Assembly (NCBI GenBank): GCA_011109175.1
Contig: RDEW01000001.1
Coordinates: 322,395-386,394 of the forward strand
Origin: Dicyema japonicum
Lineage: Eukaryota; Animalia; Dicyemida
Length of the DNA: 64,000 nucleotides
Reading direction: 5' to 3'
This document shows, piece after piece, positions 5,701 to 54,164 of this stretch (position 1 is the first letter of the stretch; every line of letters starts with the position of its first letter). Position numbers and translations under genes: made by a program. Under the pieces are notes generated by a model. It was not told the origin of the DNA, made no database searches, and saw only the letters and a list, made by a program, of their open reading frames with translations.

Positions 5701-5711
5701 CGTTATTATTT

Positions 5712-7200: not shown

Positions 7201-7209
7201 TTCAAATAA

Positions 7210-9100: not shown

Positions 9101-9174
9101 TATTTTGCTTTTAAAATGTCCTAAAAAATGTCCTATTAATTTCGCCCTAGTTATCAGGAATGAATTTGATTGAT

Positions 9175-11913: not shown

Positions 11914-11991
11914 TTAATCTAAATTTTATTAGGTCAATTTTTATTTTATTTAAATTATTAATTAATTTTTTTATTTAATTATTATTAAATA

Positions 11992-28107: not shown

Positions 28108-28929
28108 ATGAAACTAATGACAAGTTATAGCCAAATTATAGTGATTCTGATATATATAATATTCTCTACAAAAATGAGTACTGAAGTCACCGGATATAAA
28201 AAAAGCGATTGCCCTGTCCCTACATGGCTAGTTCCAATAAAGTCTAATGATCAGACCTTCTCCGTCTTATTTCAGGGAATTGTAAATTTGACTTATTCTG
28301 ATCCAAATAAAGGAGTATTAAATGTTATAAACCAAGTTGCGTGAAATTAATTTGAATGATTCTACGATTATATCTGGGAAGAATATCGACTTTCCGCATT
28401 ATTATATATCTTTATTATCAGGCAAAAACGGAATTGAATTAGAATTCAATTTTATTAATGGGGTGTCATTATAAAATATTTTGCGATCATTATCGATAGT
28501 AATATGATATTTTGAGCTAAGATAATTTGGATTCCTGATATTAATCATTATTATAATATAGCATTGAAGAATACTCATTTTAACTGTCCTAACTTGTTGA
28601 TAAAATTTGGCCCGGATTATAAAGCGAAAATTTATCATATGAAGTTTCAAATTTTTGATGGAAAAAATGGCACAAGTTTTTATGGAAGAAGTTAAATTTA
28701 TTAATAATCATTAGAATCAACGTGTGATCCCTCGATACCTATAAATAAAGTAGTTTATCCACTGAATGGTAAAATTATAATTTATTTTATAGAAACTGAT
28801 TGTACAAATAAAACTATAGTTAAAAGTAAATATAATTTTATTTCTATAGGTCCTAATGTTGATAGTTCTATAAAACGTACAATATTGGGTAAATTAATGA
28901 TTTTCCTTGTGGGAATATTAGCTATATAA
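28108..28929 (+). CDS. LAMP-like surface protein copy A: one domain, GPI-signal-like C-terminus, apparent frameshifts near 28470-28530
   Basis: Signal MTSYSQIIVILIYIIFSTKMS. With 22-24 bp introns removed it reads SDCPVPTWLVPIKSNDQTFSVLFQGIVNLTYSD...THFNCPNLLI..KFQIFDGKNGTSFYGRKSTCDP...NVDSSIKRTILGKLMIFLVGILAI*. Confidence 0.75.
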
Positions 28930-29159
28930 TTATAATTTGGGCTTCTATTATATTTGGACTTTTGTTATTATTTGATTTTTTACTTATTATTTACACAACC
29001 TCATACAATAAGTGATCGGTAAGGACAAGTTGGTTTCGAAAATATGAACAGAAAATTATCAGACTATGTTGAAATCAACTGAGAACACTAAGAATGTGTC
29101 AAGGAGCTACAGAAAGGTAATACTTAACCAGTGGATCAACCAGCAGAACAGGAATAGTT

Positions 29160-29900
29160 TGGCCACTCTGTGGGTAGACGTTTAAAAGCCTTTGGTTCAA
29201 TGGATCACATGACTTTTTGTATCGGATACTCGATAACTCTAGATTCCCTTACTGGATTGTAGATTTCGTAACAAACTTTAAAGAAATATTTAAAATCTGC
29301 CACTAATTTGCTCCCCCTGTGATCTGAACTAACTTGCTCGACGTAATAGATATAGATATCAAGATGTGTTAGACTTTGGGAACCACTATGTTAGAGGATA
29401 AAAAAAGCTATGTCTTAAATATCGAAGCGTTGAAGTTAATATTTGGTGGGGTTAAATAGAGGATCGAGAGCCTGGAAAAAACAAGATTAATTTCGAATGC
29501 TTCTACAATTCTTCAGAGAACTGGAGAAGTCGAATTTTGTTTGAGGAAAGTGGGGATTCTGCGGGTGATAAAATGGAAGAAAACATTTACCGCAATCGTA
29601 GGTATAAAGATCCCCCTGTTATGCATCTGGACTTAAAGAGCTCCATGAGAAATCTTTAATAGGACAAAAACGAAGGAAGCAATTACATGGAACTCCTTTC
29701 GAATGTTTAGGAGATATCAACGTCGACGTCAGCGAATCATCTCAGTGGTTATCACATGGGAACAATTTTCCAAGATCCAAAGGAAGACCGTAATTTGTTC
29801 TTCAACTGTGCTGGAGAAAAGTGCAACAAATTTAACTCTTCCAGGAAAAGCGTCGAGCATTTGGCAACAAGGTATGGAAAAATTAAGATTGAGTTGAAAT
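29160..29900 (+). mobile_element. LINE debris: RT domain-3 fragment and NeSL-type CCHC fragment
   Basis: VDV*KAFGSMDH..FPYWIVDFVTNF; RNLFFNCAGEKCNK..KSVEHLATRYGK. Confidence 0.65.
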
Positions 29901-30029
29901 AGAATGAAACAATAGTGACTAATGTAAATTGATGTGCTCAACGATAATTCGTCTCCTCTTGTTAAAGTGCTGTGAGAGAGGAGACTGACGACATGATTTT
30001 TGCCACTGCATTTCATCAGTTCTATTTAA

Positions 30030-30200
30030 TGATGGCATCGGTTTTGACAGATAAGACAATAAAGACGATATCCAAGGCGAAGAGTAATGGGCCGAGGGGT
30101 TCTCCTTGTACTCCAGTAATCAACTTGAAGCTGTGTTGACAGAAAATCAATGTTCAGTGATCACCATAATGAAGGTTTACATAAGATCTCGATATACTAC
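30030..30200 (-). mobile_element. CRE-like RT domain-4 fragment
   Basis: TGVQGEPLGPLLFALDI resembles the CRE motif GVQQGDPLGPLLFAL. Confidence 0.7.
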
Positions 30201-30899
30201 AAAAGAGTGCGAAGAGAAAAGCTTCATAAAGAAAACTGGTACAACGAGTAGAAAGAGCACAGCAAAAGCGAAACTCTAAGTATTCATGTGCTCATGGGTA
30301 ACGTTGGATTGCTTTAAAAACCATCAAACATTCTAATTGATGCTATAAGTAATATAAACTCAGTTTAGATTAGTTGGTAATTCAATTCCTTTTGCTAATT
30401 ACTTAATCAGATCCAGCTTACTAGGAGACGCTCAACCCTGGTCGGAATTTAAAAAATTCATATGAGAGACTATTTGTTCACTAAAATCTGGGATTGTTCA
30501 CAGCCTTCTGGAATATTTTCTCAAATCACTGTGCTTGGATGAGGCTACTAGAATGAGTCAGGATCAACAAATTAGTCAGTTTGGTTTTACCATGTCATTT
30601 AAAATTTATTAGTATTATTAATAGAGAGATTTTTTTGTTAATTCGCTGTTGAGACGTCTAATTCTTTTGCGCCTGCAACGATGGAATTCTTGAGTCGTCC
30701 AGAGAATCTGATTTCTACACGATCAGAAGACCCTAGAGAGCGCTGTTCGTTATTTGAGTGAATCTCGCTCGCCATCCTGAATGGGAATAGCAGGACAGAT
30801 GCTATTAGACCATTTGCTAACTTTTTTTCCTATATGTTTTATTACATTGGCACATTTTATATGGAGAGATTGTTAAATACGAATTAACTTTCCCTCCTA

Positions 30900-31290
30900 T
30901 AGCCGGTATCAGCAAATTATATCTCCAAGTTATTGCGCCGACGATTAAATATGCCTGTTCTCCCTGGAGATTCGTTGTTCCTTGTAAGAGGGTGGAGCGT
31001 ATGAACTCGCTCAGACAAAATATCATGAGGAATATTCAATCAGACTTTACATCCATCCCCAGTCTCTTTTCAGAAATGGCCAGGGCTTCCTACGCATGTG
31101 CAAACTAGAAAACCATGTCAGAAAGAGGGTGTTTCATACGGAGCAATTCAAATAGGCATTTAAAAAAGTGGACTCCGATAGAATTTCTCTACAGAAATAA
31201 AAGAAGACACTTCAGAAACGCTGTTGGTTCACTGGCTGAGCATTCGAAGAGAATTCGAAAGATGTCGGAGGCTGGGAGAAATTATTAAAT
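30900..31290 (+). mobile_element. C-terminal fragment of the Jockey/I-like LINE family
   Basis: KLYLQVIAPTIKYACSPWRF aligns with TLYQQTIAPAIEYASVAWRF in the 61550 ORF. Confidence 0.75.
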
Positions 31291-31384
31291 ACGAATTAAC
31301 TTTACTGATGATTAATATAATCCTAAATTAAAAAAATAGCAAATAAAAAAATTAATTAATTTTAATTTAAAAAAACAACTAAAT

Positions 31385-31995
31385 CTCAATGAACACTTGG
31401 AACCGTCCGAAGGAATTCCCAGAGACTCGAATCAAAGCATCACGCATTACTAAGTTATTTCATCCTTGGGTAAACTCAAGAATGGCAGAGCTTCTGGACG
31501 GGACAAAGTGTGTGCAGAATTATTGAAATACACGCCAGAAAGGGTGGCTTAGTTAATCTGCACAATCCTGAACAGGACGTTCAAATGTCACAGTCCATTT
31601 GATGCGGGGAATGGCACCTTGATCCCAATTCAGAAACCTGGAAGAAAAGAGGAAATCTAAAATGGTAGCGACCTTACCCGTTAGCTTGGGTGGACTGGGA
31701 ATCCTTTCACCAAAAAATTTGGTTTGCTCCGCGATTCCGTCCTCCTTGTGCCCCATCCGATTGATGATCAGGATGATTTTCCAACTTTAAACAGAATCCT
31801 CTGAAATCACAGATGTGGAGCAATTGAAAAGGATAATGCCTGAGCAGAAAGACCGTCACAGGACAATCTGAGAGATTTCTTAACCAATCAAACTAACTGT
31901 TCTTTACTTAAATAAAGTGTGTGTCCTGCCTATGCGGAGCTATAAAATACTATGGCTCTCGTGAAAAGGCTTTATTATTATTATTATTATTATGA
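31385..31995 (+). mobile_element. Internally deleted RTE-like LINE with the dispersed 3' end (repeat copy 3)
   Basis: LGKLKNGRASGRDKVCAELLKY..TLIPIQKPG (RT domains 0-1) runs into the shared 3' UTR and a (TTA)7 tail. Confidence 0.8.
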
Positions 31996-32019
31996 CCTAG
32001 TGTTACATTTGAGACATTT

Positions 32020-32600
32020 TTATTTATTTAACACCAAAGACCACGGTAAAACCAAAACTAAAAGTTTCCTCACTTCCGAAGTAATGTCTCTGCATTTCAG
32101 GTTCTTTTTGAATAGAGTAAGTAGTCCACCCCCTCTTCTTTTTTTTACGGTCTATCCTGATTGCTTCGTATCCAGGGAATGAAGGAGTGGAATCATGCAT
32201 GCGGAGTTTAGTTCTTGAATCATGGCCACGTCAATCTTCTGATTTGCCAGGATTGAACGGAGTTCCCTGACCTTGCCTTTAATTCCGTTGATGTTCAAAT
32301 GGAGAGCAGTAAATTTCCTTTCTTGGGCTGAGGGTTTTCGCCGGGAATGGGACTTTTTTGAAGCACATCGCTGGGGGTCGATAATGACCCCCGGGGGGAA
32401 GGAGTCTAATGGTCTTTTTTGGGAGGGCATTAGAAGCCCTCTGGACGTGGCCAAATCCTTTTGAATTTTTTGAATTGGTGGACCACATAACGCCACGCTA
32501 CAAGAGACATGGTATTGATATGCTACAATACTTCGATTTAAAAAAGAGAGCAATTAAAAGATGTATTCGGAACTGGCATCCAATCAATTTTTAACGTCTA
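32020..32600 (-). mobile_element. Jockey/I-like LINE with a large internal deletion (APE start fused to the 3' UTR)
   Basis: ALHLNINGIKGKVRELRSIL..IDVAMIQE. The 3' UTR aagaccacggtaaa matches 24815. Confidence 0.75.
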
Positions 32601-32604
32601 CAGG

Positions 32605-32790
32605 GTGTAAATTGTATTTTTGCCTCTTTATTTCCCCCAATACCATCAAAAAGAAAAATTGAAAGAACTTTGAGGAGTACATATGCAATCCTGAGCATCG
32701 GGAAAATCCCATCAGACGTGTGCAATAATTTGTATAGCCACATGCGGAGTTATTTAGTCAAAGCATTGGCTAAAGAAGTTTTTTAATTTT
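32605..32790 (+). mobile_element. Tc1/IS630 C-terminal fragment
   Basis: FLPLYFPQY..E..CNNLYSHMRSYL. Confidence 0.45.
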
Positions 32791-32837
32791 GTTTTTTTCT
32801 GTTAATTATAAAAATTGTTTTTTTTTAATTTGAAATT

Positions 32838-33700
32838 ATGCAAAAATTATTAAACATTTTGACAAAGTTAGTAGACAAATCGAAAAACCCCCTAAAGTTA
32901 AATTTATTTCTTGTGGTGATGAATACATTTGTTTCTGCTAATCCGAGTGGGATTATCACGGACCTACCTGCGAATAAGCGGAATGTTAAAAACAATGATA
33001 ACCAGGTTAATTGGTCCAAGTGTTGTTCGGAATACAAAAAACTGATGAATGAGTTCATAATCCACTTTCTTAACCAGAGCCAGGAAAATATCATATCTCT
33101 CCAGGCGATTATCGACCAAGTGAATAAGGAAGACAAAGATGAGTGGGTATCGGAAGTTTCCCGAGTATTTGAAACAAGATTTGAAAGACTATTTCGAGGT
33201 GGAAAGTACCGTAACAACTTCTTAGAAAGGAGATTGTAATTGGTATCTGCTTCCTATCAATTATTATATAAATTCATTTACAACAACGAATATAAACGAT
33301 ATTGTGGATATTGTTTATGATGGACAGCGGGCGTATGACGTTCTCTCCCAGAACGTAACCGAAAGAATAAGAATTAGATCCACCATATGTAACCAAACTT
33401 ACAAAACTGAAGAAACAGCTTGAATGAATAACAGAGCTTACCGGACAGAGAGGAAATCAAAGATATGACGATGAAACGAGGAATGTGCTTTCCCAATTTG
33501 GATATCCAAGATGGGTGAATTCGGCACAACTGGTGCTTGTATTCAGGATGACATAAAGATTTTGGTGAAGTAGTACGAATCCATGAATCTTTTAAGGAAT
33601 TCAGAAAACATAATTGGTGTTTTGAACTTAATTGAAGATACAAAAACCAGATGATTGAGGGGCCTCCACTTTCACCAGGTTTTTGTACAGGCAGTGTAAC
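32838..33700 (+). pseudogene. Unknown intronless ORF (133 aa open, then a stop-interrupted continuation)
   Basis: MQKLLNILTKLVDKSKNPLK...; further near-open frame NDIVDIVYDGQRAYDVLSQ... No family recognised. Confidence 0.4.
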
Positions 33701-33989
33701 CCCGTTGAAAAGCTAATCAAACAATCTTGGATACTTCCTTGAACATAAATGAACGAGGCTCTTTTTCGGACTGTAAAAGAGGTAAGATGTCATTCCCTAT
33801 TAAACCCGTAGAATTTTATTCCTCAATTTTTTAGATCAGCATTCCGTTCAGGGTTACAGGTATCGGTTCTAAGCCCAATATTCCGTTGATGATTGACTTT
33901 AGAGTATTAAGCACCTGTTTATTTTTTTATATTGCAAAGGACTCACCGTTTCCTCGGCGACCGATACTATACCTCGAGCGATTCTCTCC

Positions 33990-34230
33990 CATTACCCCTG
34001 GACATTGCCCACGTGGATGAATCATATAATAGGACTTGTTTAACAAAGGCGTTGTATAGCCTCGATTGTCTTCCGTCAATTCAGTTTTTTTTAACTATGT
34101 TCAGCGCAGCTGTATTCGTCGAACGATGTCCTTAGTGTCTCCAAATAAGATCTTGGTTTTTTTTTTTCCATGGTTCATTTTTCATCCTTCTGATATCCAC
34201 TACTTCCGTTTTGTAAATATTCATCTTAAC
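33990..34230 (-). mobile_element. RTE-like C-terminal fragment
   Basis: Homologous to 51250-51430 (ccctggacattg.ccacgt.gatgaat; cagcgcagc). Confidence 0.5.
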
Positions 34231-34699
34231 ACTTTTTAAGTTCATTAGGAGCTGCTTCCAAGTAAATGAGAACTGGTCTTATTTATTAGCCACAATTTTT
34301 AATTTAATTTTTCTGGACAGAAATAAGACAAAGCAGACGATCTATCCATAAGATTGGGTCAATGATCCAGTGGTCACCAAGGATCCATGTGAGACAAGAT
34401 GGCTTAGAGAGCTTTTGTAAGAGGAAACAGTCTGGCGATTCACGGTCCCTAAATTTAGTGCTCTTTTAACTGCTTAATTATAATAATCTAATAAATTACC
34501 AAAAATGAGAATTTTATTAACACGTGATTTACTTTTCATGAAAAAACTAAATTGTAAATTATAAAAAAAATAATGCTATTTTTGTCAACTCAGCTGATAG
34601 ATTCTCGCACTTGTTTCATAAGACGATATCGAGAAAAACATGAAATAATCTTTTACTGAAGAAAGTTTTTTTGCTGACTTTAGAGATCATTGACGCAAA

Positions 34700-34917
34700 A
34701 GATCTTAGAAAAGAGACCGTCTTGGCCCCGAAAACTCTACTCGTCTCGACAACGATGGGCTGAACTTGGTGACTTTAGAGATAATTGACCCAAACGATCT
34801 TAGAAAAGAGACCGTCTTGGCCACGAAGACTCCACTTGTCTCGACAACAATGTGCTGAACTTGGATTCTTGTTGAGAGGCTGTCGTATTTTTTATCTTGA
34901 AAATTTCGAAAGTCCAA
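34700..34917 (-). mobile_element. CRE-like RLE fragment with a ~65-bp local duplication
   Basis: QDKKYDSL..IVVETSGVF..FLRSFG. gatcttagaaaagagaccgtcttggcc occurs twice. Confidence 0.75.
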
Positions 34918-35771
34918 GCAGTTAAAAACTAAATATTAAATTTTTTCCATTAATTACTTTAATAGAGAAGGAACTCTTATCTAATGTTGAGAATGAAGTT
35001 TTGTCCATTTCTTCAATAAGAAAGTTCAAAACGTAGCTATCGAAATACGCTCTATAAATCATCCAGTCACACGTGGGTTATTGGTGGCCCTTTAGATCAT
35101 TGAGCTAATCTAACGGAGTTGATCGTCAGCTTGTAGTCCAAGGATTCCTGACGTCTCAATGAGACAAACAAGTGATCTTCCTAAATGTTTCGATACTTCC
35201 TTCTCTTAAGACCCTCGGTTTGAACAGAAGCATGACCTGGCCAAATAATTCTATGGAAGTTGGAAGAGAGAACTGATAAGTACTGCAGCAAAACCAAAAA
35301 GTTGGGCACCTTCTTAGGGGACCACAAAGATAGTCAATAGAAAACACTTGCAAATGCAACTTTACAAAAGTTTACAATGTAAAACATATATGTTAATGAT
35401 TGAATAACTAATATTTTGGAAAAAATATCCGATTTGTAAAATCGGATTAGAATTTTAAAACGTATCAAAAAATTTCAAACTATGAGACATTTTTGTTGGA
35501 AGAAACTAAAGTCTTATGTTTAATACTCTGTTTAAAATCACCCCAATTCGACAGGTAACACAGAGTATATTATCAATGTAATATTTAGTATTACGATTAT
35601 ATTAAATATTTAAATTTTCATATAAATTCATTAAAAAAGTTTAAATATCATAATTATATGAGAAAAAAATTAATTTTTATTAAATTTAAACAAAATTGTA
35701 AAAACCAAATTTTATTAATTTAAACATAAATATAATAAATATAAAAGATTAAGTTATTATCAATAAAATTA

Positions 35772-38025
35772 ATGACAAGTTATAGCCAAATTATAGTGAT
35801 TTTGATATATACAAAAATGAGTAATGAAGTCACCGGATATAAAAAGAGCGATTACTCCGTCCCAACATGGCTAGTTCCAATAAAATCTAATGATCAGACC
35901 TTTTCTATCTTATTTCAGGGAATCATAAATTTGACATATTTTGATCGAAATCAAAACGTATTAAATATTATAAACAAAGTTTCGTGAAGTTAATCTGAAT
36001 GATTCTACGATTCAATTTGGGAAGAATACTGACTCTCCACAATATTATATATATTTGTTATCAAGAGGAAACGGAATTGAATTAGATTTCGATGTTATTA
36101 ATGGAGAAGTTAATATAATAAAATTCGTGATCATTAACTATAGTAAAATGATAATTTAATCTAAGATGTGGGGTTTAATGATATTAATAAGTATTCGAAT
36201 AAAGCATTGAAGAATACTTACTTGGACTGTCCTAACTTGTTGATACAATCTGGCACAAAATATAAGGCGAAAATTTATCATATGAAATTTCAAATTTTTA
36301 ATGGAAAAAATGGCACAAGTTTTTATGGAAAAAGTTAAATTTATTATAAAAATTAGAATCAACGTGTGATCCCACGATACCTGAAAATGAAAAAGTTAAT
36401 CGACTGAATGGTAAAATTATAATTCATTTTTTAGAAAATGATCGTACAACTAAAACTACAAGTAAAATATAATTTTATTCCTTTATATCCTAATGCTGAC
36501 AGTTCTAAGGAAATAAGTATAGAAGTCACCGGATATAAAAAAAGCGATTACCCCGTACCAACATGGCTAGTTCCAATAAAATCTAATGATCAGACCTTTT
36601 CTGTTTTATTTCAAGGAATCGTAAATTTGACATATTTTGATTCAAATCAAAACGTATTAAATATTATAAACAAAGTTTCGTGAAGTTAATCTGAATGATT
36701 CTACGATTCAATTTGGGAAGAATACTGACTCTCCACAATATTATATATATTTGTTATCAAGAGGAAACGGAATTGAATTAGATTTCGATGTTATAAATGG
36801 AGAAGTTAATATAATAAAATTCGTGATCATTAACTATTGTAAAATGATAATTTAATCTAAGATATTGGGTTTAATGATACTAATAAGTATTCGAATAAAG
36901 CATTAAAGAATAGTTACTTGGACTGTCCTAACTTGTTGATACAATCTGGCACGCATAAGGCGAAAATTTATTATATGAAATTTCAAATTTTTAATGGAAA
37001 AAATGGCACAAGTTTTTATGGAAAAAGTTAAATTTATCATAAAAATTAGAATCAACGTGTGATCCCTCGATACCTAAAATGAAAAAGTTAATCGACCGAA
37101 TGGTAAAATTATAATTCATTTTTAGAAAATGATGGTATAACTAAAACTACAAGTAAAATATAATTTTATTCCTTTAGGTCCTAATGCTGACAGTTCTAAG
37201 GAAATAAGTATAAAAGTCACCGGATATAAAAAAAGCGATAACCCCGTACCAACATGGCTAGTTCCAATAAAATCTAATGATCAGACCTTTTCTATCTTAT
37301 TTCAGGGAATCATAAATTTGACATATTTTGATTCGAATCAAAACGTATTAAATATTATAAACAAAGTTTCGTGAAGTTAATCTGAATGATTCTACGATTC
37401 AATTTGGGAAGAATACTGACTCTCCACAATATTATATATATTTGTTATCAAGAGGAAACGGAATTGAATTAGATTTCGATGTTATTAATGGAGAAGTTAA
37501 TATAATAAAATTCGTGATCATTAACTATAGTAAAATGATAATTTAATCTAAGATATTGGGTTTAATGATACTAATAAGTATTCGAATAAAGCATTAAAGA
37601 ATAGTTACTTGGACTGTCCTAACTTGTTGATACAATCTGGCACGCATAAGGCGAAAATTTATCATATGAAATTTCAAATTTTTAATGGAAAAAATGGCAC
37701 AAGTTTTTCTGGAAAAAGTTAAATTTATTATAAAAATTAGAATCAACGTGTGATCCCACGATACCTAAAAATGAAAAAGTTAATCCACTGAATGGTAAAA
37801 TATAATTCATTTTATAGAAAATGATCGTACAACAAAACTACAAGTCAAAGTAAAAAATAATTTTATTTTTTTGGTCCTAATGTTCATAGTTCTAATGGAC
37901 AAAATATTGGTATTTCTGAAGAACCAAATGTTGATAGTTTAAAGAGGCTAAAGGTTGATAGTTCTTTAAAACGTACAATTTCGAGTAAATTAATGATTTT
38001 CCTGCTGGGAATATTAGTTATTTAA
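35772..38025 (+). CDS. LAMP-like surface protein copy B: three tandem domains
   Basis: Units start at ~35826, 36522 and 37213. Unit-1 introns are at 35958-35979, 36143-36165, 36334-36356 and 36411-36434. Each unit carries TYLDCPNLLIQSG..KFQIFNGKNGTSF[YS]GKKSTCDP. Some acceptors or frames are damaged (near 36487, 37075, 37870). Confidence 0.8.
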
Positions 38026-38209
38026 TTATAATTTGGGATTCTGTTATTTTTTGGAGTTGTTATTTTATTTGTTATTTACTATTTACACAACAGACTAGAT
38101 ATCTCAATCCATCTAAACATCTAGATCGATTCTCTTCAAGAATTACCAAAAATGAGTGCATTCCTTCATGAATCAATTCACTAATCATTGATGACGAATA
38201 TTAAAGCAG

Positions 38210-38470
38210 GGAATAGTTACCAGAGCTCTGGAATGCTCTTGACTTCTTTTTTCTAATGTTAGGTGTTATATACCATCCGGATCCAATGACAAGTAATCAC
38301 TGATGAGGCGTAACTCATAGATGGAACCTTCAGCCGGGATCTACAGCAGCGACATTCGATCAGGGGCCATCAGTCATTTGCCCCGCTCTTATGACAATGC
38401 ACGATATTATTATGTCGCGTCTCACCCGGGCTACCCATCACATGTTACTCGTCAATAAATCTGATTCCTG
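38210..38470 (-). mobile_element. R2-like RLE fragment (copies at ~48720-48960 and ~54360-54590)
   Basis: ETRHNNIVH motif; otherwise degraded. Confidence 0.35.
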
Positions 38471-39047
38471 TCATTCATCAATATTAAAAAGTTTCTAATC
38501 AATTATCGTTTCGCTAAAAAATAAATTTATTTTTTTATGTTTATATTTTTACTTAATTTATGTTGATTATTCTGAATTATCTTAATCTGTTACAATCTGT
38601 TCAGCTTTAGCAATGGATTAAACCAATAATTTTTTAAAACTCGTACCTCAAATTATTCACAAAAAATAGCTCATTCCCAATTAAAAAATCATATTTGATT
38701 GATGAACATTTTTTTTGATCATCCGCTTAAAATATGTTGAATAAATTCAGTTCAAAATGATCTGCATATTAGTTTTCTAGAATACTTAATTAAAAATTAC
38801 CTAAAGCATTTGAAATTTGTTCCAATATTCTGTAATGTTAGTGGAAAACATCATCCGAAGTCTCTTTTATGAAATATATAAACTTTTATACTCATGAATG
38901 ACTGTGTTTATCCCAGAAACTCTTCTTAGTTTATAAAAGGTGTTTCATTCGTAGAGGAATGAATAGAGCTTCGTTTAAAATTTGTTTCAGTTTTTAATGT
39001 ATTCCTCAGCCATTAAATTTGAAAGATAAATTTTAATTAAACCTTTA

Positions 39048-39185
39048 TATAATAATAACAGTCTTTTCACGAGAGCCATAATATTTATAGCTCTGCATAG
39101 GCAGGACACACAATTTATTTAAGTAACGAACAGTTAATTTTAACTAATCGTAGAACCAAGGAATGACCTTCATTTCTTTTTTTCT
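39048..39185 (-). repeat. RTE-like LINE 3' end repeat, copy 4
   Basis: aataataa..cttttcacgagagccata...aaccaaggaatg. Confidence 0.8.
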
Positions 39186-39539
39186 TACGGACAATGGATA
39201 ACTCGTCATGCAGAAAGTTAGCATTTATAATCTTCTGCATATTTACTTACAACCTGAGACTTGAAAAGTAAGGGGGAGATAACGATTTACAGAGTGTCGA
39301 AAATAGAGGAGTCTCCCTGATCGTCCCATATTCTAGGTATCATATACAGTTCAACTGCCCAATAGAAAAGCGCCCAAAATATAGAGATTAAAATAATTTA
39401 TCCATTTTTTCAATACTATTTTTTAGTAATTTATTAAACAACATGTTAATAAATAAAAAAGCCATTTGATTTATTAATTAAAATAAAACAGGTTCAAGAT
39501 ATCTTACGTTTTCTAACCGGATTTTCTTGGGAAAAAGTC

Positions 39540-39990
39540 TTCGACCAAGCTCGTCGCGAATGGTGTGCCGAAGGGCTGCATCCGGTTTCGTGCAAAAAGA
39601 GTGAGAACAGAGCACCCCGCTACGTTGTTATGAACAACATTGTCATGCGTGCTCTTGAAGCTGCAGACTTCCCGGTAGTGCTGGAGCCCGTAGGTTTGGA
39701 CGGCGGAGACGGGGAAAGACCAAATGGGCTAACAATCTTTCCGTTCACTGAAAGAAAATCGCTATTATGTGACTGCACTGTTGTGGGTTCTTTTTCCAAC
39801 TTGATGATGCTCAGCTCGTTGCAGTCTGCTGGATCGGCAGCCGATTTGGCCAAGAAAACCAAGATTAAAAATATGGCGTAATTGGAGATCGCTTTCGATT
39901 TATACCGGTGGTAACCGAAACGTCTAATGCTGCGGGAAGTATTACAGCCTTTTTCGTGAAGTAAATTGGTGTGAAATTGGCCCATTGTAA
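39540..39990 (+). mobile_element. CRE-like RLE domain fragment
   Basis: NNIVMRALEAADFPVVLEPVGLDGGDGERPNGLTIFPF..LCDCTVV..AGSAADLAKKTK. Confidence 0.9.
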
Positions 39991-40029
39991 GAACCGTTAA
40001 ACAGCTATATAATATCTAAGAAATTTTCT

Positions 40030-42470: not shown

Positions 42471-42653
42471 TTTTTTACGATGTGTGCTTTTTAAATTGGA
42501 TCACTTTTTTTGATTACTAACATTACCTGGGATAGGGCTAGAGTTAGGGTTGATTTAAAATAGATTAGCTTGACAGATTGTAATTTTAAATCTTTATGTT
42601 AGAAATTAAAAAAATGATTAAATTTTTGAGATAAAATTAGTATGGCTAACTAA

Positions 42654-42880
42654 TACGAAGCACTACGCGACCGATTCGCGTTTTATCCGATTGTGGTCGA
42701 GACAACTGGAGGAATAAGTGGAAAATCGCTTCGCTACCTAAAAAACTTGGACGCTTAGCTACATTAAAAAGCCACGACGCACGTGAGATCCGGTGGCTTC
42801 TCCAGTTGATCTCTGTTGCAATCGTGAGGGTCAACGCAACGTCGATAATGTTGGCGAGGTTAACTTTGGATAGCAGTGTT
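42654..42880 (+). mobile_element. CRE-like RLE C-terminus
   Basis: YEALRDRFAFYPIVVETTGG..LRYL / KLGR..REIRWLLQLISVAIVRVNATSI. Confidence 0.88.
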
Positions 42881-44499
42881 AAATGAAAAAATAAATTTAT
42901 GTTGGTTAAATAAAGTTTGGTTATTGTAATAAAATTTGCAAAAATTAGTTATTTATTTTAATTTGTAGGTAATTCCCATTCGATTGTAGAGAGTGAGAGC
43001 TATTCGCCCGTGTTTAGATTCAGGCGTTCACGAAATTTTACAAAAAGCTAATTCAAATATACTGGATTTTTATTTGAAATGGACTTTTTTTAAAATTGAA
43101 TGAAGTTTCATAGGCATTACAAAAAGGATTATATTAATTAATTTAATTGATTGTCAAAGAATTATTAATACGCTCATTAAAAAAGTTGAATTTTTTTTTC
43201 AATTTAGCTCGGAACCAACAAGTCTCTCGCAGATCGTTGCTCACAGCTTGAATCATGGAGCCGATTATTTTTCATAAAAGATTTAGCTTGATAAAAAAAT
43301 TTGGACTCTAGATTTTTATGATGATACTTTTGATGACAACAATTCAAAAATTTACCAATTTCACTTAAAATCTTTGGCCCGAGATTTTAAAAAAATGAAT
43401 AATTACCCCCAATTCATTGTATATTTCGGTTACAAATTTTGGGGTAACTCCATTATTCTACACAAATAATAAAAATAAACATCAATCTGATTACTTCATA
43501 AGTCCCCTTATGTGATTACTTCAGAAATTCATTAGGTTACACCTACCTCAATTAGAAGTTGTCAATCTGGAGTAAATATCCCCTATGACCATAAGTAAAT
43601 TTAATTAACCCCCACCAATACAACTTTAATAGCGTTGCATATGATCCTTTACATCACAAACCATCGGGTTAATTTTATCATCCTTTACAGCTACTAGCGT
43701 ATGGTGGAAACCTTGGGTGAACATCGGATTCCTACTACACCTCCGAAGGAACCAAAAAGCAACAAGATCACGTGGATCTCGATATCAATCACTAAAATTC
43801 AATATTTTGAATCGCCTCACATTCATGAATCCCACCAGAATCGTTCAATAACTCGATATAGCCTTGGGTTAGATTTCCCCCACTGGCTTCTTTGTCAGGG
43901 TTTCTCTACCTTTCTTTGTGTCTTCTCTTTCCTTGTTCATATAGAGTAGAGTGATGAGATCTATAATTCTCTGGTGGCGCCCAGTGCCAGGGTAGCACGA
44001 CAATTGATCATTTGCTTGGGTTCACACGACTGCAAAAACTGAACACCACCTTCCCTTCCTCTCTTCTGGATAGAGTTGTGTGTGATCCTTATATACCAGT
44101 TTGTGAAGTCTACGATGTAGCATGCATGTACCTTTTGTGCTTACGGAATTTCAATTTAAGATTCAACAGGATAAATTCCTAAGAACAAAAATCGTCCTCA
44201 TAACCAATTCTCTGTTCAGTTTTCCCTCCCATTACTCGACAACGCGGCAATCCGGAGTAATCGTTCCGGCTTCATCACTTTTTGTGGCTTTATGTCTGTC
44301 GCTTCTACCAATCAGCGATAGAAGCGTACAATTAAATTTGGTAAAAAAACTCACACCTTTCCAAATTCTCATGAAAGAGGAACGTCGTAGATTCAGGAAA
44401 GCTATGGGTACTGGAGGAGCACAGCGCAAAAAGTCACTTACTTCCATCTCCAGTCGCTCCTTTGCTGTCAATAAAAGTCTGTACCACAGCTCTTTCACC

Positions 44500-44880
44500 T
44501 TGTCAGGAATTTTTTTTCAATGATGATCAAAAATAAACCTGATGGGCTCTGATTTGACATCAAAGACCTCAAACATGTTTTTTACTGTTTTAACTTTGAA
44601 AAAAACGTTCACAACTAACAATTGAGTAGCCAACTGTGAGTTATGAACGAATGCAAAGTTGGAAAAACATTTTAGCCAGTTCAACTTTTGAAGCCATAAA
44701 ATCCTTCGCAATTCTGTTTCTACTTCGGAAAAGAGAGTCAACGATTTCTTCGTAGAAAATAGATGAGTTCATGTCAGTCTCAAAATAACTACCAAAATTC
44801 TGACATTTTCGGTTCAAGGTTTCCAAATGTTCCTTGTTTTCAACATCAATTGAATCCAGCCTTAACAAAACGAAAGCTTG
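44500..44880 (-). mobile_element. hAT transposase C-terminal relic (ZMYM1-like)
   Basis: FETDMNSSIFYEEI... followed by a decayed IVSCERFF dimerization motif. Confidence 0.55.
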
Positions 44881-45179
44881 TCAGGGAACCTACGAACCCG
44901 GAATGTGCGTTCTAAAAGTTAGACCTTCAGTCTGTGTCCGAATTTAATTTATTAAGAAAAAAAGAGAGTGAATGGTCAATAGCGGCCGACTGGAGATGGA
45001 AGTAAGTGACTGCGTGGCTATTTCCCCTCAAGAGATTCGCTCAAATAACCAGGAGCGCTCATGGGTGTCTCCTGATCGTGTAGAAATTCGATTCCTGAGA
45101 CGACTCAAGAATTCCAGCGTCGCAGGCTTAAGGGAACCAGATGTCTTAAGGGAGTGTAACGAACAAAAAATAATTGGGT

Positions 45180-45480
45180 AGGGCCGCGTACTTTACCCTT
45201 TCAATCCCTCGGCCTTCTCAGCGGCAGAACAGGCTCCAGAGGCATTCTGTAGTAAGTTGTCGATGGAGGTGACGTCAAGAGGATTTCCGGCTTCAAAAGG
45301 AAAGGTTATCATTCCAATCTGGTCGTTTTCCGTCACGCCTACAAAGACAGACTGGTTCGAGCATGGAGCGGTATCCGACGGCGTCCAAAGATAACCTAAC
45401 GACTTTGTTCATGGTCATGTGACTGAAAAATCTGCTTGCACTCTTCAGTCTTAATGAGGTCCTCAGATTTAAGGTCAATA
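45180..45480 (-). mobile_element. CRE-like RLE fragment (duplicate at 52160-52490)
   Basis: MNKVVRLSLDAVGYRSMLEPV.LCRRDGKRPD..FPFEAGKPLDVT..SAAEKAE. Confidence 0.88.
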
Positions 45481-46269
45481 ATTCTATCGAGCCTATCTAA
45501 AACTAAATATTAACTTTTTTTCATTAATTACTTCAATAGAGAGGGAACTCTTATCTAATGTTGAGAATGAAGTTTTGTATATTTCTTCAATAAGAAAGTT
45601 CAAAACGTAGCTATCGAAATACGCTCTATAAATCATCCAGTCACACGTGGATTATTGGTGGCCCTTTAGATCATTGAGCTAATCTAACGGAGTTGATCGT
45701 CAGCTTGTAGTCCAAGGATTTCTGACGTCTCAATGAGACAAACAAGTGATCTTCCTAAATGTTTCGATACTTCCTTCTCTTAAGACCCTCGGTTTGAACA
45801 GAAGCATGACCTGGCCAAATAATTCTATGGAAGTTGGAAGAGAGAACTGATAAGTACTGCAGCAAAACCAAATTGTTGGGCACCTTCTTAGGGGACCACA
45901 AAGATAGTAAATAGAAAACAATTGCAAATGCAACTTTACAAAAGTTTACAATGTAAAACATATATGTTAATGATTGAATAACTAATATTTTGGGAAAATT
46001 ATCGGATTTGTTAAATCGGATTAGAATTTTTAAAATCACCCCAATTCGATAGGTAACACAATGTATATTATCAATGTAATATTTAGTATTACGATTATTT
46101 TGAATATTTTAATTTTCATATAAATTCATTAAAAAGTTTAAATATCATAATTATATGAGAAAAAAATTAATTTTTATTAAATTTAAACAAAATTGTAAAA
46201 ACCAAATTTTACTAATTGAAACATAAAATATAATAAATATAAAAGATTAAGTTATTATCAATAAAATTA

Positions 46270-48521
46270 ATGACAAGTTATAGCCAAATTATAGTGATTT
46301 TGATATATACAAAAATGAGTAAAGAAGTCACCGGATATAAAAAGAGCGATTACTCCGTCCCAACATGGCTAGTTCCAATAAAATCTAATGATCAGACCTT
46401 TTCTATCTTATTTCAGGGAATCGTAAATTTGACATATTTTGATTCAAATCAAAACGTATTAAATATTATAAACAAAGTTTCGTGAAGTTAATCTGAATGA
46501 TTCTACGATTCATTATGGGAAGAAAACTGACTCTCCACAATATTATATATATTTGTTATCAAGAGGAAACGGAATTGAATTAGATTTCGATGTTATAAAT
46601 GGAGAAGTTAATATAATAAAATTCGTGATAATTAACTATTGTAAAATGATAATTTAATCTAAGATATGGGGTTTAATGATATTAATAAGTATTCGAATAA
46701 AGCATTGAAGAATACTTACTTGGACTGTCCTAACTTGTTGATACAATCTGGCACAAAATATAAAGCGAAAATTTATCATATGCAATTTCAAATTTTTAAT
46801 GGAAAAAATGGCACAAGTTTTTATGGAAAAAGTTAAATTTATCATAAAAATAGAATCAACGTGTGATCCCACGATACCTAAAATGAAATAGTTAATCGAC
46901 CGAATGGTAAAATTATAATTCATTTTTAGAAAATGATGGTATAACTAAAACTACAAGTAAAATATAATTTTATTCCTTTAGTCCTAATGCTGACAGTTCT
47001 AAGGAAATAAGTATAGAAGTCACCGGATATAAAAAAAGCGATTGCCCAGTACCAACATGGCTAGTTCCAATAAAATCTAATGATCAGACCTTTTCTGTTT
47101 TATTTCAAGGAATCGTAAATTTGACATATTTTGATTCAAATCAAAACGTATTAAATATTATAAACAAAGTTTCATGAAGTTAATCTAAATGATTCTACGA
47201 TTCAATTTGGGAAGAATACTGACTCTCCACAATATTATATATATTTGTTATCAAGAGGAAACGGAATTGAATTAGATTTCGATGTTATAAATGGAGAAGT
47301 TAATATAATAAAATTCGTGATCATTAACTATAGTAAAATGATAATTTAATCTAAGATATTGGGTTTAATGATACTAATAAGTATTCGAATAAAGCATTAA
47401 AGAATAGTTACTTGGACTGTCCTAACTTGTTGATACAATCTGGCACGCATAAGGCGAAAATTTATCATATGAAATTTCAAATTTTTAATGGAAAAAATGG
47501 CACAAGTTTTTCTGGAAAAAGTTAAATTTATCATAAAAATTAGAATCAACGTGTGATCCCACGATACCTAAAAATGAAAAAGTTAATCGACTGAATGGTA
47601 AAATATAATTCATTTTTTAGAAAATGATCGTACAACTAAAACTACAAGTAAAATATAATTTTATTCCTTTAGATCCTAATGCTGACAGTTCTAAGGAAAT
47701 AAGTATAGAAGTCACCGGATATAAAAAAAGCGATTACCCCGTACCAACATGGCTAGTTCCAATAAAATCTAATGATCAGACCTTTTCTGTTTTATTTCAA
47801 GGAATAGTAAATTTGACATATTTTGATTCAAATCAAAACGTATTAAATATTATAAACAAAGTTTCGTGAAGTTAATCTGAATGATTCTACGATTCAATTT
47901 GGGAAGAATACTGACTCTCCACAATATTATATATATTTGTTATCAAGAGGAAACGGAATTGAATTAGATTTCGATGTTATTAATGGAGAAGTTAATATAA
48001 TAAAATTCGTGATCATTAACTATAGTAAAATTATAATTTAATCTAAGATATTGGGTTTAATGATACTAATAAGTATTCGAATAAAGCATTAAAGAATAGT
48101 TACTTGGACTGTCCTAACTTGTTGATACAATCTGGCACGCATAAGGCGAAAATTTATCATATGAAATTTCAAATTTTTAATGGAAAAAATGGCACAAGTT
48201 TTTATGGAAAAAGTTAAATTTATTATAAAAATTAGAATCAACGTGTGATCCCTCGATACCTAAAAATGAAAAAGTTAATCCACTGAATGGTAAAATATAA
48301 TTCATTTTATAGAAAATGATCGTACAACTAAAACTACAAGTCAAAGTAAAAAATAATTTTATTTTTTTGGTCCTAATGTTCATAGTTCTAATGGACAAAA
48401 TATTGGTATTTCTGAAGAACCAAATGTTGATAGTTTAAAGAGGCTAAAGGTTGATAGTTCTTTAAAACGTACAATTTTGGGTAAATTAATGATTTTCCTG
48501 CTGGGAATATTAGTTATTTAA
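46270..48521 (+). CDS. LAMP-like surface protein copy C: three tandem domains
   Basis: Units start at ~46324, 47016 and 47708 (692-bp period) with the same micro-introns. Terminal DSSLKRTILGKLMIFLLGILVI*. There is a -1 homopolymer shift near 46880 and the last acceptor near 48370 lacks AG. Confidence 0.8.
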
Positions 48522-49539
48522 TTATAATTTGGGATTCTGTTATTTTTTGGAGTTGTTTTCTGATTTGTTATTTATTATTTACACTACAGACTGGAAATCT
48601 CAATCCATCTAAACATTTAGATCGATTCTCTGTAAGAATTACCAAAAATGAGTGCATTCATTCATGAATCAATTCATTAATCATTGATGACCAATATTAA
48701 GGCAGGGAATATTTACCAGAGTTCTGGAATGCTCTTGACTTCTTTTTTCTAATGTTAGGTGTTATATACCATCCGGATCCAATGACAAGTAATTACTGAT
48801 GAGGCGTCACTCATAGATGGAACCTTCAGCCGAGATCTACAGCAGCGACATTCCATCAGAGACCATCAGTCATTTGACCCGCTCTTATGTCAATGTACGA
48901 TATAATTATGTCGCGTCTCACCTGCGCTACCAATCATATTTTACTCGTCAATAAATCTGATACCTTCATTCATCAATATTAATAAGTTTCTAATCAAAAA
49001 TCGTTTCGATAAAAAATAAATTTATTTTTTTATGTTTTTATTTTTACTTAATTTATGTTGATTATTTTGAATTATCTTAATCTGTTACAATCTGTTCAGC
49101 TTTAGCAATGGATTAAACCCATAATTTTTTAAAACTCGTACCTTAAATTATTCACAAAAAATAGCTCATTCCCAATTGAAAAATCATATTTGATTGATGA
49201 ACATTTTTTTTGTTCATCTGCTTAAAATATGTTGAATAAATTCAGTTCAAAATGATCTGCATATTAGTTTTCTAGAATACTTAATCAAAAATTACCTGAA
49301 GCATTTGAAATTTGTTCCAATATCCTGTAATGTTAGTGGAAAACATCATCCGAAGTCTCTTTTATGAAATATATAAACTTTTATACTCATGAATGACTGT
49401 GATTATCCCAGAAACTCCTCTTAGTTTATAAAGGGTGTTTCATTCGTAGAGGAATGAATAGAGCTTCGTTTAAAATTTGTTTCAGTTTTTAGTGGATTCA
49501 TCAGCCATTAAATTTGAAAGATAAAGTTTGATTAAACCT

Positions 49540-49822
49540 TTATAAAATAATAACGGCCTTTTCACGAGAGCCATAATATTTATAGCTCCGCATAGGCAGG
49601 ACACACAATTTATTTAAGACAACTCGCAGGACACACAACTCGCATAGGCAGGACACACATTTTATTTAAGTAAAGAACAGTTAATTTTAACTAATCGTAG
49701 AACCAAGGAATGACCTTCACTTCTTTTTTTCTTTTTTTTGAGTGTGGTCTTTTCTAGAAAAATGAGTTCCGCAGTGAGTATCCACTGATGACGGCGTCAC
49801 TCGTCAAATTCCTTCTGCATCG
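49540..49822 (-). repeat. RTE-like LINE 3' end repeat, copy 5, with internal micro-duplications
   Basis: gcaggacacaca is repeated three times at 49595-49660. Confidence 0.8.
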
Positions 49823-50309
49823 TAGATGCGTGGAACTTTCTACCAAGTGAAGTGCAGCGAGAATCGAAATTGTAACTATGATACTAGGTTTATCTAAATA
49901 AACTTTTACATGATCCTCTGAAAAAATAAAATATAATTTCATTACTTCTGATTGCGGATGATCTGATCTTTACAAATATGTCTGATTGATTTTTCACAGA
50001 ATGGGATAAGGTATTTAGTTTTAAACTCTTTTCCTTTTTCTGTTTTGATCTCACAAAAGCCGATTACAAAACAAGTTGTTTCGAATACTTTGCAAATATT
50101 TATTTCACTTAAGGTCTGCATGGATTGTTTATTAGGTTTTTTGGCAATCACGTGGTATTTAGAATCGGAAACACGTCAATCCAAGAATTCTAAAATCACT
50201 ACGAGAATAGAATAGTCAATTCTAAAAATCTAGGCTAAAATTGATCACATTACTCGTTACGTGACCACGTCGCTCAATATATTTTATGTCTTCACAGTTA
50301 TCGCTAATT

Positions 50310-50830
50310 TTGTATTTTTGTAATGTTGGAGAATCTTACAAATGAAATAGAAGGTATCACTAACATGGTTTTCAACAACAATGGTTATCAAACATATCGC
50401 TAAAAATCTTGATGTTCCACTAAAAACAGTCTATCGGATGATAGCGGAATTCAATAATATGGAAAAATTTATAAAAACCTGAAGAAAACGCAAAAAACAT
50501 ATACGACGAAAATTCTCTTTATAAGAGAAAGGTTGAATGAAGAATACGATATTTCATGTTCGAGACTTTCTAATGAAATATTTCAAAATGGAAAAAAATA
50601 AGGGATTTAATGATGCGAGTCTCCAAACAATTGAAGTGTTGACTATGAATCGTTTAATATTAAAAAGATTAATGGAATCGGTAAATTAATTTATTTTTTT
50701 CTCAAATATGGTGTTAGGTTGTTTTTTGAAAATTTCTGGATAATCTGATAGATTCTCTCTTTAGTGTTGAAATTTCGGATTGATGTGATGAAGTGATGTA
50801 AAAGTGTTCTTAATTAGACTTGAACACCCG
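50310..50830 (+). mobile_element. Deleted Tc1/mariner element (duplicate at ~56070-56589)
   Basis: HIAKNLDVPLKTVYRMIAEF HTH. Right end ttgaacacccg|TA. Confidence 0.55.
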
Positions 50831-50979
50831 TATATGCCCGATACGAGTACAGACTATAAAAACCACATTAAACAGGTCATCAGGCACCTAATCACCTCAT
50901 AAAAATGATTGATTGACAGGTGACATGTAGCCTATTAAAGTAGTCAAAATGTTTTCCAAATTTCATTTTTTTTTGATGT

Positions 50980-51430
50980 ACTTGAGATCAGCATCAAGTA
51001 TCCATGTAAATGTGATCCTTGGTTGATCCAGTCCAACAAAGTACTCCTCCATCGCTATATACGCTGGGGTATCCAATTCCGATCTCAATATATGTCCAGA
51101 AAGCCTTCATCTAAAATCAGTGATCGAAGAGTCAAAGGATCAGTGGAAGCAAACATTACATAAATTTTTTTTGTCTATTTTCTTAGGCTAATTCAGTCCA
51201 CCATTGTCCTGAGCAGCCTTCAATGAATCTATCCCATGTTACTCAGCCCTGGACATTGTCCACGTTGATGAATTATTTTTAACATTTTTTTCAGCGCAGC
51301 AGTAGCAGGGGTATTTCCGAGCGATATCCTCACTTTCTCTAGGACCCAAGTTTATTGGTCTTCTTCCATGGTTCATCCGATCTTTTTTCTGTTTATATGA
51401 TATCAACTGCTTCCGTTTTGTAAACATTCA
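50980..51430 (-). mobile_element. RTE-like C-terminal fragments (duplicate at ~56730-57150)
   Basis: RLSGHILRSELDTPAYIAMEEYF..PRIT; STWT..AAQD. Confidence 0.6.
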
Positions 51431-53296
51431 TTGTTAGGTGAATGAAAACTGATCTATCCCTCGATATGAAGTCGACGTCGTCATCATAAATGGATCCTCC
51501 TAATTCCCCTTCATAACATTTTCGAAGGTGACGTAGCGCCGTCTCCATGTATATGACAAACATCAAAAGGAAAGAGGGAGTCTCCTTGAGGAGAAACTTT
51601 TTTTCACTTTTGGAGTTACAAGAAGTGGTCTATAGAGAGAAAGAACATGACGCCAACACCCTTGGAGATCCTAATAGGAAAGAAAACAGAGGAGACCGAC
51701 AACAACAAACTTGTGTAGAATCAGCGGAGGAATACACTAAGCCAAGCTGAGGGCATGGAGTAAATTTGTCAGCATCACTTAGTTTATTTATTTCGGTTTA
51801 ATGGTGGTCTTTGAACTGTTTCTCCCTTATTTTCAGTTTTCATTAATGCCTTTAAATTTATGTTTTTACTCATTAAAACTTTCAACCCTCTCACCAAAGC
51901 ATGTCGTTACAAGGCAGTATAACATAGGTAGACCAACGGTGATGAATCTAGCGATTTGCATTCCATGGATACTTCTCCAGAAATCGTACCCTACAACAGA
52001 TACAACTACTAACTGCATCTGATGATTGGTTTTATCGATTATTAGAAATTATCGTTCATTCTATGATCAGTGTATTTTAATACTTTAAACAACTGACTAA
52101 ATTTTCTATTTTGGAGGGACGAGGAACCAGTTGACCTATCAGTACTTGCGTGGAATTGGTAGGGCCGCGTACTTTACCCTTTCAATCCCTCGGCCTTCTC
52201 AGCGGCAGAACAGGCTCCAGAGGCATTCTGTAGTAAGTTGTCGATGGAGGTGACGTCAAGAGGTTTTCCGGCTTCAAAAGGAAAGGTTATCATCCAATCT
52301 GGTCGTTTTCTGTCACGCCTACAAAGACCGACTGGTTCGAGCATGGAGCGGTATCCGACGGCGTCCAAAGATAACCTAACGACTTTGTTCATGGTCATGT
52401 GATTGAAAAATCTGCTTGCACTCTTCAGGTAGAAGTGAATTCTGCTTGCACTCTTCAGTCTTAATGAGGTCCTCAGATTTAAGGTCAATAATTCTATCGA
52501 GCCTATCTAAAACTAAATATTAACTTTTTTTCATTAATTACTTCAATAGAGAGGGAACTCTTATCTAATGTTGAGAATGAATTTTTGTATATTTCTTCAA
52601 TAAATAGATCAAAACATAGTTATCGAAATACGCTATCTAAATCATCCAGTCAAACGTGGATTATTTGTGGCCCTTTAGATCTTTGAGCAAATCTAACGGA
52701 GTTGATCGTCAGCTTGTAGTCCAAGGATTCCTGACGTCTAATGAGACAAACAAATGATCTTCCTAAATGTTTCGATACTTCCTTCTCTTAAGACCCTCGG
52801 TTTGAACAGAAGCATGACCTGGCCAAATAATTCTATGGAAGTTGAAAAAGAGAACTGATAAGTACTGCAGCAAAACCAAATTGTTGGGCACCTTCTTAGG
52901 GGACCACAAAGATAGTCAATAGAAAACACTTGCAAATGCAACTTTACAAAAGTGTAATGTAAAACATATATGTTAATGATTGAATAACTAATATTTTGGG
53001 AAAAAAATACCGGATTTGTTAAATCGGATTAGAATTTTAAATCGTCCAATGCTCTGTTTAAAATCACCCCAATTCGATAGGTAACACAATGTATATTATC
53101 AATGTAATATTTAGTATTACGATTATTTTGAATATTTTAATTTTCATATAAATTCATTAAAAAGTTTAAATATCATAATTATATGAGAAAAAATTAATTT
53201 TTATTAAATTTAAACAAAATTGTAAAAACCAAATTTTACTAATTGAAACATAAAATATAATAAATATAAAAGATTAAGTTATTATCAATAAAATTA

Positions 53297-54164
53297 ATGA
53301 CAATTTATAGCCAAATTATAGTGATTTTGATATATACAAAAATGAGTAAAGAAGTCACCGGATATAAAAAGAGCGATTACTCCGTCCCAACATGGCTAGT
53401 TCCAATAAAATCTACTGATCAGACCTTTTCTGTCTTATTTCAGGGAATCGTAAATTTGACATATTTTGATCCAAATCAAAATGTATTAAATATTATAAAC
53501 AAAGTTTCGTGAAGTTAATCTGAATGATTCTACGATTCATTATGGGAAGAAAATTGACTCTCCACAATATTATATATATTTGTTTTCAAGAGGAATCGGA
53601 ATTGAATTAGATTTCGATGTTATTAATGGAGAAGTAAATATAATAAAATTCGTGATCATTAACTATAGTAAAATGATAATTTAATCTAAGATGATGTGTT
53701 TCCTGATACTAATAAGTATTCGAATAAAGCATCGAAGAATACTTACTTGGACTGTCCTAACTTGTTGAATACAATCTGGCACAAAATATAAGGCGAAAAT
53801 TTATCATATGAAATTTCAAATTTTTAATGGAAAAAATGGCACTAGTTTTTATGGAAAAAGTTAAATTTATTATAAAAAGTAGAATCAACGTGTGATCCCA
53901 CGATACCTAAAAATGAAAAAGTTAATCCACTGAATGGTAAAATTATAATTCATTTTATAGAAAATGATCGTACAACTAAAACTACAAGTAAAATATAATT
54001 TTATTTCTTTAGGTCCTAATGTTCATAGTTCTAATGGACAAAATATTGGTATTTCTGAAAGACAAAATGTTGATTGTTTTAAGAGGCTAAAGGTTGATAG
54101 TTCTTTAAAACGTACAATTTCGGGTAAATTAATGATTTTCCTGCTGGGAATATTAGTTATTTAA
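53297..54164 (+). CDS. LAMP-like surface protein copy D: one domain, intact final acceptor, GPI-signal-like end; +1 shift near 53768
   Basis: Same exon structure as the other copies. The last exon reads SPNVHSSNGQNIGISERQNVDCFKRLKVDSSLKRTISGKLMIFLLGILVI*. Confidence 0.78.

Follow-up and report, generated by a model that had tools for sequence, protein, structure and literature searches.

What is encoded by the short open reading frames (ORFs) ending in LNIINKVS, each followed by a stop, that recur in the genome of Dicyema japonicum? They lie in a stretch of 64,000 nucleotides (assembly GCA_011109175.1, contig RDEW01000001.1, positions 322,395 to 386,394 of the forward strand), which we call the window and number from its first letter. 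The sequence-only reading of this DNA had taken them for first exons of a hidden family of surface proteins with very short introns and a domain resembling that of the LAMP proteins. We find that the family is real and that its micro-intron structure is well supported. With a probability that we put at roughly 0.6, the genes here code for a family of LAMP-domain glycoproteins that is divergent and specific to this lineage, and whose fold, glycosylation, anchoring and location we infer. It has two forms: a main form (genes A to D) and a P form (genes P1 and P2, carried by a palindrome). On our best reading, the LAMP assignment rests on gene structure, on cysteine geometry and, for P1 and P2, on overall architecture.

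Cassettes, Genes and Micro-Introns

Eight homologous cassettes with a period of ~692 bp were found with a 17-nt anchor and a repeat finder. They are grouped in four genes on the same strand, A, B, C and D, which carry 1, 3, 3 and 1 domains, respectively (Table 1). A tblastn search with both domain types as queries returned exactly six family genes in the window and no further member, the number that had been predicted with the palindrome pair included. The proposal that the repeated ORFs are first exons is correct for A, B1, C1 and D1, where they open with a Met and a hydrophobic leader, while those of B2, B3, C2 and C3 are exons that open cassettes within a gene.

Introns were set by homology, by aligning the eight cassettes and then taking the conserved GT...AG segments; longest-ORF dynamic programming over all GT-AG pairs had produced contrived extra introns, and the homology-defined ones were used instead. 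Five homologous introns are present in every cassette, with lengths of 22, 23, 22-24, 23-24 and 24-25 nt, as expected from the proposed gene model with GT-AG introns of 22-25 nt. In introns 1-4 both the GT and the AG are unchanged in all eight cassettes, whereas other sites vary at 0.22 per column; by our own arithmetic, the probability that all 16 splice-dinucleotide columns remain unchanged at 0.225 per site is ~0.02. When introns 1-4 are removed, B1, B3, C2 and C3 each show an open frame of ~180 codons, which from base composition we estimate to arise by chance about 1e-6 times per cassette.

The distribution of changes between copies gives further signs of coding. Indels of 1 nt are ~5 times denser in intron columns than in exon columns. 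In the linker, the indels that distinguish copies of exon 5 are multiples of 3, while intron 5 varies by 1 nt and contains a stop in A. We also considered a single intron of 51-52 nt made up of intron 4, exon 5 and the first base of intron 5, with the remainder of intron 5 coding, and rejected it because of the stop and the 1-nt length change in A and because the exon 5 indels are multiples of 3. Outside the out-of-frame stretch of A, the 76 substitutions that separate A from C2 include no stops, against 3.5 expected by simulation (P=0.022), and pairwise ratios of nonsynonymous to synonymous substitution rates (dN/dS) are 0.3-0.7.

Could the short ORFs simply be fragments of repeats or transposons, and the "introns" never be spliced? 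The cassettes are indeed tandem repeats in a repeat-rich window, but we consider this very improbable. The frame is restored only on removal of the GT-AG segments, the splice dinucleotides are invariant, and indels that are not multiples of three fall mostly within introns. Each gene has a leader at its 5' end and a hydrophobic tail at its 3' end, and no transposon domain was found in the cassettes (Pfam, exon pieces). The intron size also suits the class of genome, and the myxobolid myxozoans are the only other animals with reported introns this short (PMC13644364).

The ends of genes A to D were judged by eye. The N-terminus is hydrophobic and leader-like. The C-terminus consists of 11-12 hydrophobic residues after S-G-K, with no cytoplasmic part. 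Relative to A, the leader of B, C and D has a 12-nt in-frame deletion (28140-28180 in A compared with 35790-35815 in B). It cuts the hydrophobic core to about 7-8 residues in B to D, so leader function is less certain there than in A.

Gene Structure and Cysteine Geometry of the Domain

For comparison we mapped two fish genes, LAMP1b and a LAMP2-like gene, on their genomic loci; the comparison covers vertebrate genes only. The intron that follows the N-x-T-F strand is in phase 0 in both fish genes and in the dicyemid domain (intron 1). A second phase-0 intron is present in LAMP1b, was not resolved by the mapping in the LAMP2-like gene and is absent from the dicyemid genes. A phase-1 intron precedes the third Cys by 22 codons in LAMP1b, 23 in the LAMP2-like gene and 21 in the dicyemid family (intron 2, and also in P domain 1), and another precedes the last Cys by 3 codons in all of them (intron 3, in all three dicyemid domain types). 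The exon between these two phase-1 introns measures 168 nt in LAMP1b and 171 nt in the LAMP2-like gene, compared with 168 nt in the B1 type, 165 nt in the C2 type and 168 nt in P domain 1.

Of the four LAMP1b/LAMP2 domain introns, three have a dicyemid counterpart in the same phase and, by Cys anchoring, at a position within one or two codons. An unsupervised global hhalign alignment superimposes intron 3 on the LAMP intron without offset and leaves intron 1 off by one column, while intron 2 lies about six columns off, beside a gap of nine. Both P domains obey the LAMP-like intron rule. For random positions and phases we estimate the chance of two matches, each of equal phase and no more than one codon apart, at about 0.002 and of three at about 1e-5, rough figures that ignore phase bias. 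Every domain type keeps an invariant C-terminal Cys pair around a Q-x-F ... F-G motif. The third and fourth Cys are spaced by 37 in fish LAMP1b, in the main family and in P domain 2, while P domain 1 has a spacing of 38 (our own count). Each main-family domain has four N-x-S/T sequons, one of which, judged by eye, shares its strand with a sequon of LAMP. Gene structure supports the LAMP reading well.

Sequence and Fold Searches

Several results weigh against the LAMP reading, some from searches and others, described in the next section, from the state of the genes. Pfam Lamp gave no match at E<=10 when 11 exon pieces of up to 112 aa were examined with hmmscan. LAMP proteins were then gathered from a 72-residue LAMP1 C-terminus query, confirmed by its matches, and from a fish exon. 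A local hidden Markov model (HMM) of 42 LAMP1/2 sequences scored the spliced domains at -0.6 to 2.2 bits, within the shuffle distributions. The HMMER check that the sequence-only reading had proposed was accordingly null, with Pfam on exon pieces and with the local HMM on the spliced domains. Comparison of LAMP with the spliced domain by hhalign gave a probability of 0.9%, and at that probability the local match was collinear with the proposed LAMP correspondence.

A PDB sequence search found no match for the 112-residue P2 exon or for a nine-row profile of the C-terminal exon. The exon-1 ORF had no homologue or transcript-derived protein in large protein collections, and exon 2, compared with 1.8 billion representatives, matched only three repeat-protein artefacts. 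An AlphaFold2 model of the 112-residue P2 exon (eight rows), which covers about two thirds of the domain, was all-beta, with a mean predicted local distance difference test (pLDDT) score of 43, too low to use; Foldseek of this model against PDB gave nothing below E 0.4. The first LAMP disulfide (Cys 1/2) is absent: in the global alignment the main family has S/F and D/T at the LAMP Cys columns, and the P domains likewise have no Cys at these columns. No paper on LAMP-like genes in dicyemids came up in text searches.

The claim of a LAMP-like domain end is supported by gene structure, Cys geometry and motif, while no sequence or profile method detects LAMP. Such null results across all sequence and profile tests, together with the absent first disulfide, a different anchor and a sole structure model that is unreliable, are what one would expect of a dicyemid-specific secreted beta-rich family unrelated to LAMP, in which the likeness of motif and introns is coincidental. 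We consider this unlikely. The intra-domain introns match those of LAMP in phase in all three cases, and in position in 3 of 3 by Cys anchoring and 2 of 3 on the unsupervised alignment. The exon length of 168 nt and the Cys spacing are also shared, and the P form is built like LAMP1/2.

Frame Breaks

After removal of the homologous introns no gene is open from end to end, and all six carry at least one break. Intron removal had been expected to give a leader, domain(s), linker and hydrophobic end in four copies; each of these four genes is in fact interrupted. Gene A has a -1 shift in exon 2 near 28457 and a +1 shift in exon 3 near 28519, with a TAA between them near 28470, and gene D has a +1 shift in exon 3 near 53761. 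A -1 shift in exon 4 (A5 to A4) is common to B2 (near 37069) and C1 (near 46873), and B3 has a -1 shift in exon 5 near 37827. The acceptor of B1 intron 5 (36462-36486) is AT. In intron 5 of B3 (37850-37873) and C3 (48346-48369), the last introns of B and C, the AG is lost, and these introns end in ...TTTTTTTG, that is, GT..TG. In P1 there is a -1 shift in the long domain-2 exon near 1819, and the 5' part of P2 is degenerate, with three -1 indels in domain 1 and lost splice sites. Deletions of 1 nt account for 8 of the 10 indels.

Gene C is nearest to intact. Its C2-C3-tail portion forms a single frame of ~400 codons if the GT..TG intron at 48346-48369 is spliced, and only through this TG acceptor does the body join the conserved hydrophobic tail exon in frame. 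P2 retains an undamaged domain 2, transmembrane helix and tail, a part that includes a 112-codon exon (10934-11269). Two attempts were made to rescue the -1 shift in the B2/C1 linker. An upstream alternative donor runs into a stop. An exhaustive search with at most two introns, TG acceptors allowed, restored the frame only at the cost of the last Cys or of most of the linker.

These lesions raise the question of whether the genes are dead. The family may once have coded for a protein and now be represented here by six dead copies that evolve under neutral drift amid many transposons, an explanation that we regard as a serious one, if somewhat short of even odds. All six genes carry at least one frame-disrupting lesion, and the -1 shift of B2 and C1 sits on a common linker haplotype, so it is inherited and not a random error; no combination of two introns saves both the frame and the last Cys there. 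Substitutions in the cassettes fall evenly on the codon positions (38/38/45), and exons diverge among cassettes as fast as introns do. The cluster is flanked by reverse-transcriptase fragments, and CACGTG does not occur within genes A to D (word count in the window).

On the other side, the published assembly merges Illumina and PacBio RS II assemblies (36.7% GC, 49% repeats, 377 scaffolds; PMC6736024), and most of the lesions are 1-nt deletions. Also against dead copies stand the invariant splice sites, the lack of nonsense substitutions, the depletion of indels in exons and the C2-C3-tail portion, open over ~400 codons. Either most of the cluster is pseudogenised or 1-nt consensus errors have hit it; recent pseudogenisation within repeat-rich DNA and assembly indels in genes that are alive account for the data about equally well. 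The earlier claim of an expanded surface coat is not borne out as far as function goes, since every copy is frame-broken as assembled, the codon positions are hit evenly and the exons diverge as fast as the introns.

The Palindrome, the Duplications and the Window

The two P genes lie on the arms of a palindrome. Their two domains are joined by an N/P-rich hinge, as read from a composite of both genes. The lesions of the two arms are complementary, affecting domain 2 in P1 and domain 1 plus the 5' splice sites in P2, and arm identity falls to ~89-92% near the 5' half of the P genes. P1 domain 1 has ~115 residues in the current model. A 65-nt gap at 1160-1224, between exon 1 and exon 2 of P1, may contain a 12-nt micro-exon between introns of 23 nt and 30 nt; in P2 the corresponding splice sites carry mutations.

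Genes B, C and D are carried by tandem segmental duplications with 93-97% identity. Gene A, ~84% identical to the other copies, is the oldest copy.

The window is AT-rich, with a GC content of 26-44% per 2 kb, and its sole long ORFs are reverse-transcriptase fragments; the figures of the published assembly are compatible with it. CACGTG occurs 19 times in the window, which is ~3 times what mononucleotide frequencies predict; GACGTC is equally common. One CACGTG copy, at 10731, is in the transmembrane exon of P2, and its P1 counterpart is TACGTG.

Table 1. Positions of genes, cassettes, introns and neighbouring features in the window.
Feature	Position	Strand	Description
Palindrome	1..12908	.	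At least 12.9 kb, carries P1 and P2; arm segments 89-99% complementary
Gene P1	1004..2270	+	Leader, two diverged LAMP-like domains, stalk, transmembrane helix, 22-residue tail
P1 introns	1292-1314, 1483-1504, 1627-1650, 1987-2011, 2048-2076	+
P1/P2 domain 1 phase 1-1 exon	1315-1482		168 nt, equivalent of the exon at 36166..36333
Gene P2	10649..11913	-	Layout as P1, other palindrome arm
Gene A	28108..28929	+	Leader, one LAMP-like domain (cassette start 28186), short stalk, hydrophobic C-terminal tail
Duplication block with gene B	34925..39186	+	Segmental duplication
Gene B	35772..38025	+	Leader, cassettes B1 35829-36410, B2 36525-37102, B3 37216-37794, tail exon 37874-38025
Phase 1-1 exon	36166..36333	+	168 nt, with Y-x-x-C ... 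Q-x-F ... F-x-G
Gene C copy of the gene B block	45499-49618		~96.6% identical
Gene C	46270..48521	+	Leader, cassettes C1 46327-46906, C2 47019-47597, C3 47711-48289, tail exon 48370-48521
C2 intron 1 (reference)	47148..47169	+	22 nt, phase 0
C2 intron 2	47333-47355	+	23 nt, phase 1
C2 intron 3	47521-47543	+	23 nt, phase 1
C2 intron 4	47598-47620	+	23 nt
C2 intron 5	47648-47672	+	25 nt
Sequence 3' of C	49825-52154		Recurs 3' of D at 55449-57856
Gene D copy of the gene B block	52154-55412		~93-95% identical
Gene D	53297..54164	+	Leader, cassette 53354-53936, stalk, hydrophobic tail 54013-54164
Unannotated repeat ORFs	35156-35359, 45730-45933, 52738-52941	-	Examples; such ORFs lie beside each main-family gene
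Reverse-transcriptase ORFs	61550-63983	-	Non-LTR retrotransposon (Pfam RVT_1), split in 2 adjacent ORFs

Discussion

If the LAMP reading is correct, the two forms of the family would differ in their attachment to the membrane. The P form, with its LAMP1/2 layout, would be a protein of endocytic or lysosomal membranes. The main form would consist of a leader, one to three LAMP-like domains of ~175 residues, a short Ser/Asn-rich stalk and a hydrophobic end resembling a glycosylphosphatidylinositol (GPI) signal; because of this end it would be an outer-leaflet surface or luminal glycoprotein. The number of domains could change through unequal crossing-over of the in-frame 692-bp cassettes within the tandem segmental duplications.

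A dicyemid feeds only by endocytosis through its surface. One may imagine that the LAMP glycocalyx domain was redeployed there, as GPI-anchored arrays of one to three domains that vary in number and sequence by cassette recombination and form a protective or host-facing coat on an endocytic epidermis bathed in octopus urine; the breaks would then be assembly errors and the last intron of genes with three domains a true GT..TG intron. We hold this to be distinctly doubtful. If expressed, the genes would represent, to our knowledge, the first LAMP-domain family that combines a GPI-like anchor with variation in domain number, and they would bear on how a membrane-protecting glycocalyx is built in an animal that endocytoses through its surface. 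The locus would also be a case in which intron phase, intron position and exon length recover a homology missed by Pfam, HMM and profile-profile methods, and it illustrates how standard gene callers, together with 1-nt indels of an assembly, can conceal whole families.

Comparison with Known Systems

Like LAMP1 and LAMP2 (Pfam PF01299; 5GV0, 8FY5), the P genes encode a leader, two beta-rich domains of ~115-165 residues linked by a short hinge, and then a transmembrane helix that ends in a short tail, and they share the C-terminal Cys pair at a spacing of ~37, the Q-x-F ... F-G motif, introns in phases 0/1/1 and a 168-nt phase 1-1 exon. They differ in the stalk from the last Cys to the membrane, which by our own count has ~33 residues against ~8 in LAMP, and in the 22-residue tail, which lacks the G-Y-x-x-hydrophobic sorting motif. 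The family as a whole differs from LAMP1 and LAMP2 in having no significant sequence or profile similarity to them and no first disulfide, and the main form differs from the LAMP family in having neither transmembrane helix nor cytoplasmic tail; the missing sorting motif, helix and tail add to the points against the LAMP reading.

Genes A and D, with a leader and one LAMP domain, resemble the single-domain LAMP relatives, such as fish LAMP1b (241 aa) and LAMP3/DC-LAMP (4AKM), and their intron layout is that of LAMP1b. CD68 and LAMP5 are further single-domain relatives. As far as we know, every known single-domain LAMP relative is a type I membrane protein that ends in a cytoplasmic sorting tail, whereas the proteins of genes A to D end in a GPI-like hydrophobic tail of 11-12 residues and have up to three domains.

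The tandem surface-protein families of parasites, taken as a general class, offer a different parallel. The domain here would be of LAMP ancestry and not a parasite-specific fold, but the family shares with that class tandem segmental duplication, a domain number that would change by unequal crossing-over, fast protein divergence (the dN/dS range given above) and many broken copies. Among the LAMP relatives known to us, the predicted main form stands apart by its GPI-like end and by its arrays of one to three domains.

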